Shown here in pieces: positions 6,201 through 9,200 of a stretch of 64,000 bases of DNA. Source of the DNA: Oculina patagonica (lineage: Eukaryota); contig NC_135771.1 in NCBI RefSeq assembly GCF_052425735.1, positions 3,596,001 to 3,660,000 of the forward strand, written 5' to 3'. The position numbers and the translations under genes were made by a program. How positions within the stretch are numbered: position 1 is the stretch's first letter; the number at the start of each line of letters is the position of its first letter. The notes below the pieces were generated by a model. It was given only the letters and a program-made list of their open reading frames with translations. It ran no database searches and was not told the DNA's origin.

Positions 6201-9200
6201 AGTACCTCATCGTCATCACCAACAATCTCATTATAAGTTGGAATTCTGAAACAACAGAGAATTAAGTGAATGAAGAGCAAACATTTTGTTTACCAGAGCT
6301 ATGATTTTAATTAACTTGAATGAAAAAGAAAAGTCAGGCTATACCTTTCCGAATCCTTCTCAATGTAATTTCTGTCGAGAATGTAATCTCTCAAGAACTG
6401 TTCACCTTCATCCAAACTGGGGTCCATCCAGTAACGTCGCAATGCATCCTGTAAATGCAATTCAAAAGGGTAATCAAGTGTACAATTCTCACAACTTACA
6501 CTGTTTACATGTAGTTCCAAAAATGTCCATATCCCCCCCCCCCCCACAGTAGGGGTTGGAAATTCCTGCGGTTTGGGACATAGTCAAAAACTGTTTGGAA
6601 ATTCCTAGGGGTTGGGAGGTCTCAGAGAGACCAAAACCTTTGAAGGAAATGTAATGGTATGAAGCTTATTTGGAATTTCCATAGGGGTAGGTAGGTCTTA
6701 GGAAAAATCCCTTCCGTGGGGGAGGTATGAATAATTTTTGGAACTTCACATTACAAGAATTGTGCGAAAATCAGTTCAGAGATTAAACCAGTCACGATGC
6801 TTGTTCTCAGGCCCTCCAAGTACTACTTCCTTTCTGCTTGCGACTCCAAAAAATCTAATTTTCACAACCTCATAAGGGACAAAGTCATATAAATTATAAG
6901 CATTTTGTTCTGGTATAAACTGGAAACTTATCAAGACTGATGTGCACAATACAACTGTTTTATTGAGCTGAGTTTATTTCAAGTGATACAAAACAATCAG
7001 GGAAATCATATTATCACGCGTGACATGTCTTGCACATGATCTCAGTGTGGTCTCTCATAACAATAAGGAGAATTGGATACTCTTTACTTCTCTGTCGGTT
7101 TGATTTTCACAAGATCATAACGCAATGTGCTTGTGATTAAAATCTGTCACTGACTCTGATCAATTTTTGAAAAATAAACTAGTGGGCAGCACTCTGCGAA
7201 CGATATTTGTTTTGTAAAACTGATTTATTCTCCTACGCGTTTCGTCCGACTGTCGCGGACTTCTTCAGGGAGTTTTACAAATTAGAATTACATGCTTGTA
7301 TTTATACATAGTGTAAACCGTACAACTTATTTTTACATGTTATTTTACGGATTTACGTATAGGAAACAAGCAAAATTTCTACGCAGGGCGTTACTAAGGT
7401 GTAGCATATGTGTGACATTTTTCTGTCATGACAAATGCGTGACATATTTATTTTTTGAAAAATAAACTAGTGGGCAGCACTCTGCGAACGATATTTGTTT
7501 TGTAAAACTGATTTATTCTCCTACGCGTTTCGTCCGACTGTCGCGGACTTCTTCAGGGAGTTTTACAAATTAGAATTACATGCTTGTATTTATACATAGT
7601 GTAAACCGTACAACTTATTTTTACATGTTATTTTACGGATTTACGTATAGGAAACAAGCAAAATTTCTACGCAGGGCGTTACTAAGGTGTAGCATATGTG
7701 TGACATTTTTCTGTCATGACAAATGCGTGACATATTTATTTTTGGGGATCACAGATTTAGTACTAAATCTGTGATCCCCAAAAATAAATATGTCACGCAT
7801 TTGTCATGACAGAAAAATGTCACACATATGCTACACCTTAGTAATGCCCTGCGTAGAAATTTTGCTTGTTTCCTATACGTAAATCCGTAAAATAACATGT
7901 AAAAATAAGTTGTACGGTTTACACTATGTATAAATACAAGCATGTAATTCTAATTTGTAAAACTCCCTGAAGAAGTCCGCGACAGTCGGACGAAACGCGT
8001 AGGAGAATAAATCAGTTTTACAAAACAAATATCGTTCGCAGAGTGCTGCCCACTAGTTTATTTTTCAAAAATTTTCAAAAATTGTATAAGCATTTTGTTC
8101 TGGTATAAACTGGAAACTTATCAAGACTGATGTGCACAATACAACTGTTTTATTGAGCTGAGTTTATTTCAAGTGATACAAAACAATCAGGGAAATCATA
8201 TTATCACGCGTGACATGTCTTGCACATGATCTCAGTGTGGTCTCTCATAACAATAAGGAGAATTGGATACTCTTTACTTCTCTGTCGGTTTGATTTTCAC
8301 AAGATCATAACGCAATGTGCTTGTGATTAAAATCTGTCACTGACTCTGATCCGTTACTAATAAAAGCAAGCCCTAACAATTAAGCAGTATTATATGCTTT
8401 CCCCCTATACGGGTGTCTGATGTAAAAACAGAAGGGGCTATCTATGTCAAATGTGGAGGAGAACACTGAATAGAAAGGGAGATGAGGGAGATAGGTCTGG
8501 AGTCCTGGGGAGAAATGACAGCTATAGCAGCAAACAGAGCCACTTAGAGACAGAAAGCCTAATTCTAACCTTATTTCTAACCATTAGGATATAAATGTAT
8601 TATTTTACTATCATATTTCTTTCAACTAACCATTTCCAGAGCAGGTTTTGTGTCCTTTACATTCTGTTGTCCTTTTAACCATTCAACATAAGCTCTTTCC
8701 TCTTCCATCTGTTAAAAAAATAATAATGTCAACCCTCCAAGTTTATTTTTTTCCTTAGTGGCCATTTGGCCACCGACTGCTCAGGTTTGGTCGCCAGTGA
8801 AAAATTTTAGTTGCTAAATTAAGCTTACACTTTCAATCCTTCTTCTCAATTTTAGTCGCCAGGCTGGCGACTTTGGTTCCAATTTAGTCGCCAGCTCCAA
8901 AATTTTAGTCGCCATGGCGACTAAAATGGTCTTAACTTGGAGGGTTGAATGTATTGCTTTTCTCAACATCAAACTACAGAGATCTACATGTACAATCAAA
9001 GCATGCCAATGCAAAAAAAGATAAAATAAAAAGCTATAGCTGAAAAAAAGGAAAAATATAGTCAAAAATTGTTTACTGTGAGAACAGTTTATAAAAATAT
9101 ATCAATATTGCAGGATGATAAAAAAAAATACATCACATGAACTGTAAGTTTTCCTCACTCACTCCTAATACTAAAATTTCAAGAAATCATTTGCAACTAA

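Follow-up and report, generated by a model that had tools for sequence, protein, structure and literature searches.

The insert and its target site

Why does an intron of the KRI1 gene of the coral Oculina patagonica carry three copies of the same hammerhead ribozyme motif, two in tandem and the third inverted? The locus lies in a stretch of 64,000 nt of contig NC_135771.1 (positions 3,596,001 to 3,660,000, forward strand), which is referred to here as the window and whose own numbering is used throughout. A sequence-only reading of this DNA had taken the repeat for a free-standing 288-nt retrozyme. The analysis described here points to another origin: the insert (7162-8084, 923 bp) is very probably the product of a single recent insertion of a coral PLE (Penelope-like element) family, in which three 5′-truncated copies of the 3′ untranslated region (UTR) of the element, primed from both strands of the target, are joined head to head at a hairpin. 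The repeat unit matches, at 100% identity, the 3′ UTR of an element that encodes a reverse transcriptase (RT), and the label of a free-standing retrozyme is not supported.

The insert consists of unit A, unit B, a 46-nt palindrome, the inverted unit C and an 11-nt extension. Unit A (7162-7451, minus strand) is 5′-truncated at the base of the 3′-UTR hairpin, and its 3′ end (...TTTTTCAAAAATT) adjoins the left copy of the target site. Unit B (7452-7739, minus strand) is the equivalent of a pseudo-long terminal repeat (pseudo-LTR, pLTR); its 5′ side enters the hairpin and it is joined to unit A at an AAAA(A) microhomology, the junction from B to A reading ...TTTTTCAAAAA|ATAAATATG... The palindrome (7739-7784, TTTTTGGGGATCACAGATTTAGT|ACTAAATCTGTGATCCCCAAAAA) is perfect and has its centre between 7761 and 7762, where the fold-back pivots on the native hairpin of the 3′ UTR. 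Unit C (7785-8073, plus strand) differs from unit B at one base, the mirror position of 7678. The 11-nt extension (TTCAAAAATTG, 8074-8084, plus strand) is present at one end only and resembles the PLE "tail" (a concept taken from PMC8557442 and PMC11167929), or is the result of a slipped re-initiation at the 3′ terminus; similar extensions (TTTTCAAAAA) are present at loci L004 and L006. Both outer ends of the insert are 3′ ends of the element, of which nothing but the 3′ UTR, the terminal ~290-330 nt, is present, with the hammerhead ~68 nt from the 3′ end and the 46-nt hairpin at the start of the UTR.

The description given in the sequence-only reading is accurate with respect to this layout. 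The two hammerheads of the minus strand had been placed in tandem, 288 nt apart, and the corresponding units (7164-7451 and 7452-7739) are 100% identical at a spacing of 288 nt. The third had been described as inverted in a near-perfect arm of ~310 bp, and each inverted arm (7452-7761 and 7762-8071) measures 310 nt, with zero spacer and a single mismatch (G7678 versus its mirror position). No real protein had been seen, and there is no open reading frame (ORF) of more than 64 aa inside the insert. What had not been noticed is that the insert is flanked by a perfect direct duplication of 267 bp, the left copy of the target site being 6895-7161 and the right copy 8085-8351 (100% identity, 0 mismatches).

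The unoccupied site is found in an independent coral sample (run X2), where a 752-nt contig joins 6894 directly to 8085 with 0 mismatches and holds the 267-bp segment once, as is exactly expected for an empty site. The insert is polymorphic: it is filled in the assembly and empty in the independent sample. Run X1 has the same species label and may come from the very sample that was assembled; its contigs end exactly at 8085 and at 6924, and such breaks are expected if the 267-bp segment has two different left neighbours. The insertion is very recent, as indicated by the identity of units A and B, the single base by which unit C departs and a 267-bp duplication free of mismatches. An older copy of the family (L011, G000:C10:10966882-10967165; 96.5% identity) is 5′-truncated at the hairpin base and is flanked by a target duplication of ~78 bp with 97% identity.

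A palindrome without spacer, a perfect duplication and a contig without the insert in run X2 are also what would be seen if the palindrome and the duplicated flank had arisen during assembly, from a chimeric long read folded back on itself or from a mis-join of haplotypes; neither junction is spanned by a contig shown here, and PLE structures are known to trouble assemblies (PMC8557442). Such an artefact is nevertheless highly improbable, as the two arms differ by one base, the 11-nt tail is present at one end only, the contig breaks of run X1 at exactly 8085 and 6924 fit two left contexts, and the older family copy has its own duplication of ~78 bp. The recurrence of fold-backs elsewhere argues in the same direction: a fold-back with the same centre is present at C9 and at C10 of the genome, analogous pairs exist in sister families, and a short fold-back extension is found in Porites.

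The hammerhead motif

Hammerhead A (helix I, core and helix II) occupies 7211-7281 on the minus strand, with a predicted cut after A7234, between 7234 and 7233. For hammerhead B (7499-7569, minus strand) the cut is predicted between 7522 and 7521, and for hammerhead C (7954-8024, plus strand, antisense to KRI1) after A8001. The core is exact in each of them, and the pairing, read from the sequence, is accompanied by covariation. A 35-nt core, CTGAAGAAGTCCGCGACAGTCGGACGAAACGCGTA, has exactly three exact matches in the window, at 7234-7268 and 7522-7556 on the minus strand and at 7967-8001 on the plus strand, and no match in any of 100 shuffled windows, in agreement with the three identical minimal type I hammerheads noted in the sequence-only reading.

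The CUGAAGA ... GAA core is exact in all three copies of the window and is invariant across 12 distinct sequences of three families. Helix II has 5 bp (GUCCG/CGGAC) and is followed by the motif GAAA-CGCG-UA|G, with the cut site at UA|G. The A15.1-U16.1 pair is invariant (12/12 sequences), and position 17 is an A, in agreement with the H17 rule, which disallows G. Helix I is bipartite, with a CUCC/GGAG part of 4 bp and a distal part of ~9 bp. An extra A, which had been overlooked previously, separates A9 from helix II. With one base pair only, closed by CGCG, helix III is not a stable helix; a 6-bp helix (ACGCGU/ACGCGU, self-complementary) is possible only between two copies. Minimal hammerheads have been described in the pLTRs of PLEs by Cervera and de la Pena 2014 (PMC4209133), where both the extra A and the helix III of one base pair are usual, and where the ribozymes are thought to be dimeric via the palindromic loop. 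The core, the helix III of one base pair and the CGCG loop bear out the proposal that these are minimal type I hammerheads with a palindromic stem III, of the type found in Penelope pLTRs.

A pattern search of the whole genome gives 46 matches, versus 4 with the reversed control; these belong to three families with an identical core. Helix II varies between the families as GUCCG/CGGAC, GUGUG/CACAC and GUUUG/CAAAC, and Porites lutea adds GUCUA/UAGAC. When the 12 distinct sequences are aligned, 95% of the paired cells are complementary, versus 25-42% with slid partners, and compensatory changes are seen at three pairs of helices I and II; the observed score is attained by 0/500 shuffles. As judged from this alignment, the motif is a conserved, structurally constrained PLE-type hammerhead in which helices I and II covary.

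The unit as the 3′ UTR of a two-ORF element

A search of the coral's own genome with the unit gives at least 48 matches, which are mostly single dispersed copies; statements about these copies cover the best-scoring 40 of 152 candidates. Most of the copies share a fixed 3′ end (...TTTTTCAAAAA) and have variable 5′ ends, which indicates reverse transcription from the 3′ end. The genome-wide search for copies and for an autonomous Penelope element, which had been proposed with the sequence-only reading, identifies an apparently intact PLE-like element of ~3.4 kb with two ORFs, located inside a chromosome (L033:2743-6420, G000:C10:9640750-9644416, minus strand). The order of its parts is inverted unit, palindrome, unit, 30-nt leader, ORF1, ORF2, palindrome and unit, and its 3′ unit is identical to the unit of the window at 288/288 positions. 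The C-terminal RT coding sequence is found immediately upstream of the unit also at C11 and C8. Because an identical 3′ unit is present and the RT gene adjoins it, the 288-nt unit is identified as the pseudo-LTR, or 3′ UTR, of a PLE-like element that encodes an RT, and this PLE family has its hammerhead in the pLTR.

ORF1 (297 aa) is coiled-coil-like and has a basic tail. ORF2 (583 aa) has the motifs GLKF and DKN, which correspond to the PLE GxKF/Y motif and to a variant of the DKG motif (motifs as in PMC8557442). Near its full length, ORF2 is 27-33% identical to RTs of the O. patagonica genome that are in one frame with GIY-YIG domains, for example in a single frame of 1070 aa on C12. An annotated O. 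patagonica protein shows 100% identity with ORF2 over 73% of its length. ORF2 homologues of ~583 aa are frequent in Porites and Acropora, where they are annotated solely with DUF8422 and HTH_animal. A Pfam search with ORF1 and ORF2 gives no match in the library used, which was searched without DUF8422 and HTH_animal; a PDB sequence search with ORF2 gives nothing significant, and a search of the ESM Atlas with ORF1 gives no usable match. By its motifs and its homologues, ORF2 is a PLE-type RT, present in the source element at C10 and not in the insert of the window. The C10 element has no GIY-YIG endonuclease, as it is filled by its two ORFs and just 5 nt separate the end of ORF2 from the hairpin.

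PLEs without an endonuclease (EN-minus PLEs) are usually telomeric, and the endonuclease-less C10 element is, unlike these, chromosome-internal. The existence of EN-minus PLEs as such is already known (PMC8557442).

The retrozyme explanation can now be weighed. It holds that the insert is a true non-LTR retrozyme, a non-autonomous 288-nt multimer that is cut by its hammerheads, circularised and returned to DNA by rolling-circle reverse transcription. Two tandem units of 288 nt with a type I hammerhead each and a low GC content fit this description, the monomer fold is more stable than that of shuffles (z = -3.8), and such elements are known in corals (PMC7229834) and have been derived from PLE pLTRs in a 2026 preprint (10.64898/2026.07.22.740005). 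Furthermore, runs guessed to be RNA, with three species labels, contain 40-86% of the sampled words of the unit; these runs, however, consist of contigs and are only guessed to be RNA, and the stretch is absent from all runs recorded as RNA. The retrozyme explanation is improbable in view of the 100% identity between the unit and the 3′ UTR of the RT-encoding element, and also because the copies end at the 3′ terminus of the element and at the 3′-UTR hairpin, and not at ribozyme cut sites. The tandem of the window, of two units only, is also the only one among the scored copies, the others being single or inverted pairs, and its hammerhead is of the minimal PLE type, versus the canonical loop-loop type of the coral retrozymes (PMC7229834).

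The fixed 3′ end also bears on the idea of a DNA transposon of the fold-back or miniature inverted-repeat transposable element (MITE) type, with terminal inverted repeats of ~310 bp and hammerhead-like motifs that are incidental. Long perfect terminal inverted repeats are indeed present at three loci. Most copies are, however, single and 5′-truncated, as predicted for reverse transcription, in three copies the unit forms the 3′ UTR of an RT gene, and the target duplications vary (none, ~78 bp and 267 bp), making this explanation extremely improbable.

A few further observations concern the copies themselves. A contig from a run with a different species label (guessed RNA) is 100% identical to 7451-7776, covering unit and hairpin; either the element family is near-identical between the labelled species, or the labels represent very close relatives. 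For older copies with 82-84% identity, an RT gene was sought downstream and none was found; these have a different repeated context, beside a hAT-like ORF. Both flanks are common to these copies (L025, L027-L030 and L031:2675-3055), which points to amplification within a larger repeat, and in one case the adjoining ORF resembles the N-terminus of a hAT/TTF-type zinc-finger transposase. In an older subfamily (L015, L017, L018, L021 and L024) the unit lies between inverted copies of ~25 nt (ctacgactttggaaaacgg... and ...ccgttttccaaagtcgtag), and the hairpin has shrunk to TTTTTGGGGAAAA.

The 3′-UTR hairpin and fold-backs at other loci

In the C10 element the 46-nt palindrome sequence directly follows the RT stop codon. 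The palindrome of the insert is the native hairpin of the element and not a product of the fold-back. The hairpin sites compared are those of the window (7739-7784), of Porites lutea (L073:4251-4295) and of L048 and L051 after the RT stop. Families A, B and C as well as Porites keep the shape TTTT-GGGG...|...CCCC-AAAA after the RT stop and differ from one another in its sequence. The conservation of position and shape, together with the covariation of the sequence across the four families, indicates that the hairpin is under structural selection.

Fold-backs with the same 44-nt centre are found also at C9 and C10, and head-to-head pairs are present in two sister families of the O. patagonica genome. 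The fold-back pivots on the hairpin in 3/3 cases of family A, in 1/2 of family C and in 0/1 pair examined of family B. In Porites lutea the upstream pLTR begins at the hairpin, with a short fold-back extension. The hallmark PLE arrangement of pseudo-LTRs, partial tandems and adjacent inverted 5′-truncated copies is thus seen in the window, at C10, at C9 and in Porites lutea.

A model of the insertion

It is possible to account for the whole insert by one integration event. Both strands of the target, nicked 267 bp apart, would prime reverse transcription. One cDNA would copy an RNA up to the hairpin base (unit A) and, after a jump at AAAA onto a second RNA at its 3′ end, copy this one into the hairpin (unit B), and the other cDNA would copy a third RNA into the hairpin (unit C). 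The cDNA ends in the hairpin sequence, being self-complementary, would anneal and then be extended and filled in, and fill-in of the staggered nicks would yield the 267-bp duplication. Copy-back (snap-back) synthesis of arm C from B was also considered for the window locus and was rejected, because C alone has the 11-nt 3′ extension, differs by one base and stops at the unit end instead of continuing into A.

This model is related to the twin priming of L1, which was reportedly described by Ostertag and Kazazian in 2001 and in which both 3′ ends of a staggered break are said to prime, giving an inverted structure with a target duplication; both segments are said to come from one RNA, and the inversion to be accompanied by truncation. 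An inverted structure within a target duplication is common to both, as is, in the proposed model, priming by both 3′ ends. Unlike L1 twin priming, the window has whole 3′-terminal units head to head at a palindrome, and an extra tandem unit. Cleavage and extension of both DNA strands by a purified PLE protein, that of a lizard, have been observed in vitro (Frangieh et al. 2024, PMC11167929).

Several points weigh against a two-strand-primed PLE insertion and have to be set beside the evidence in its favour. Two-strand priming is deduced from one locus and from in vitro work on a distant PLE, and the source element has no endonuclease domain by which the target could have been nicked. Target duplications were searched for at the C9 and C10 insertions and none was found. 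The fold-back junctions of families B (L057) and C (L065) lie off the hairpin, such that the pivot is preferential and not obligatory. The sample data are assembled contigs only; no contig shown spans the left junction (7161|7162) or the tandem junction, and the contig break at 8085 is the sole hint of the right junction in run X1. Finally, the Rfam hammerhead models, whose use had been suggested with the sequence-only reading, give zero matches at the gathering threshold and zero at E<=10 on 7000-8250. This miss can be ascribed to the extra A after A9 and to the single-base-pair helix III, as the models provide for a helix III but not for the additional base. Rfam matches to miRNA-type families on the long hairpin were set aside as spurious.

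A more general proposal, which is tentative and as a joint statement rather doubtful, is that the 3′-UTR hairpin itself generates the PLE hallmarks in a currently active, interstitial clade of scleractinian two-ORF EN-minus elements. The hairpin would stall reverse transcription, thereby setting the pLTR boundary, and would promote the jump that gives tandems. Being self-complementary, it would allow cDNAs primed on either strand of the target to pair head to head, giving the inverted copy. The long and variable duplications (none, ~78 bp, 267 bp) would reflect distant nicks that are pre-existing or made in trans.

The KRI1 context and the predicted RNA

The KRI1 gene is on the minus strand, as shown by a Kri1_C domain match at 911-1126 (minus strand, E = 9e-19) and a Kri1 domain match at 4531-4620 (minus strand). 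Exons with canonical acceptor and donor sites lie on either side of the insert, at ~9637-9556 and at ~6448-6345 (both minus strand). The upstream KRI1 exons are tentatively assigned from these splice sites and from N-terminal motifs of KRI1, which the peptides of the flanking exons (an acidic SESDNDDEF... and another) presumably represent. From the flanking exons and the minus-strand KRI1 domains it follows that the insert is intronic and that units A and B are in the sense of the pre-mRNA, as had been stated for the two tandem hammerheads. Head to head with the start of KRI1 at ~14034, a plus-strand gene from 14287 on resembles a GPI ethanolamine-phosphate transferase (PIGO/PIGG-like peptides).

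In the fold predicted for a KRI1 transcript that runs through the carrier allele, unit C pairs with unit B in a near-perfect hairpin of ~320 bp (-615 kcal/mol, z = -47), and hammerhead A stays free with a hammerhead-like local fold. The idea that the inverted arm could form long double-stranded RNA (dsRNA) is consistent with this predicted hairpin. Cutting at both A and B would release a segment of 288 nt (7521-7234). Release of this segment, which the sequence-only reading pictured as a monomer or a circle, cleavage of the intron and masking of ribozyme B by the antisense arm as an off switch are hypothetical, though chemically reasonable, ideas. The published minimal PLE hammerheads are weak cutters, active as dimers or with the protein of the element (PMC4209133, PMC11167929). 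An evolved role of the insert for KRI1 is unlikely, because this ribozyme class is weakly active and the insert is polymorphic, being missing from the independent sample. The hammerheads are a conserved part of the RNA of the element and not an adaptation of KRI1, and nothing points to a function for the host. As an intronic allele of KRI1 the insert is polymorphic, and it adds to the pre-mRNA two ribozyme motifs in sense orientation and a hairpin of ~320 bp able to form dsRNA; it may be mildly harmful, or it may trigger small-RNA silencing of the element family.

Comparison with known systems

The hammerheads described here share with those of PLE pLTRs (PMC4209133) the type I layout with the CUGANGA...GAAA core, the helix III of one base pair with a small palindromic loop that allows a dimeric ribozyme, and the position in the repeat that flanks the RT gene. 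They differ in that the coral family is new in sequence and has the long bipartite helix I (4 bp + ~9 bp), and in that their partner is a two-ORF element devoid of a GIY-YIG domain.

As described by Craig et al. 2021 (PMC8557442), PLE insertions are strongly 5′-truncated and often partially tandem, often with an inverted 5′-truncated copy directly 5′ and, at one end, a short tail. The insert of the window has the same features, with a 5′-truncated copy in partial tandem, an adjoining 5′ inverted truncated copy and a one-end extension. Unlike the published insertions, all three copies are cut down to the 3′ UTR, the inverted junction coincides exactly with the palindrome of the conserved hairpin, the target is duplicated over 267 bp, and the tail has 11 nt instead of 30-40 nt.

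With metazoan non-LTR retrozymes (PMC7229834; 10.64898/2026.07.22.740005) the unit has in common the AT-rich, protein-free sequence of ~300 nt, the type I hammerhead in tandem and the coral host, as well as the origin from PLE pLTRs that has been proposed for retrozymes (Li et al. 2026 preprint, 10.64898/2026.07.22.740005). In contrast with these retrozymes, there are two tandem units only, the unit has a sequence identical to the UTR of an element with an RT gene, and the ribozyme is minimal. Vertebrate retrozymes are reported to be depleted from introns (PMC7229834; 10.64898/2026.07.22.740005), whereas the insert of the window is intronic.

The locus is thus an ordinary but very fresh transposon insertion, which extends the known association of minimal hammerheads with PLEs by a coral family. 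PLE-type minimal hammerheads are already known to be abundant in corals (PMC7229834); what goes beyond the known picture is the hairpin as preferred pivot, the perfect 267-bp duplication and an endonuclease-less partner RT that appears active, in a family that is seemingly still mobile within chromosomes. The value of the locus is that it is a clean natural record of one PLE integration, with identical copies, a perfect duplication, an empty allele elsewhere, a tail at one end and an inverted junction on a conserved hairpin. The insert gives testable predictions on how PLEs build tandem and inverted pseudo-LTRs.

Other features of the window

The segment 6700-6760 has a very high contig depth in 4/4 runs, including those with other species labels, as expected for a high-copy repeat common to corals. 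Two histone 3′ stem-loops, at 59789-59834 and 62028-62072 (both minus strand), score above the Rfam gathering threshold and mark a histone gene cluster.

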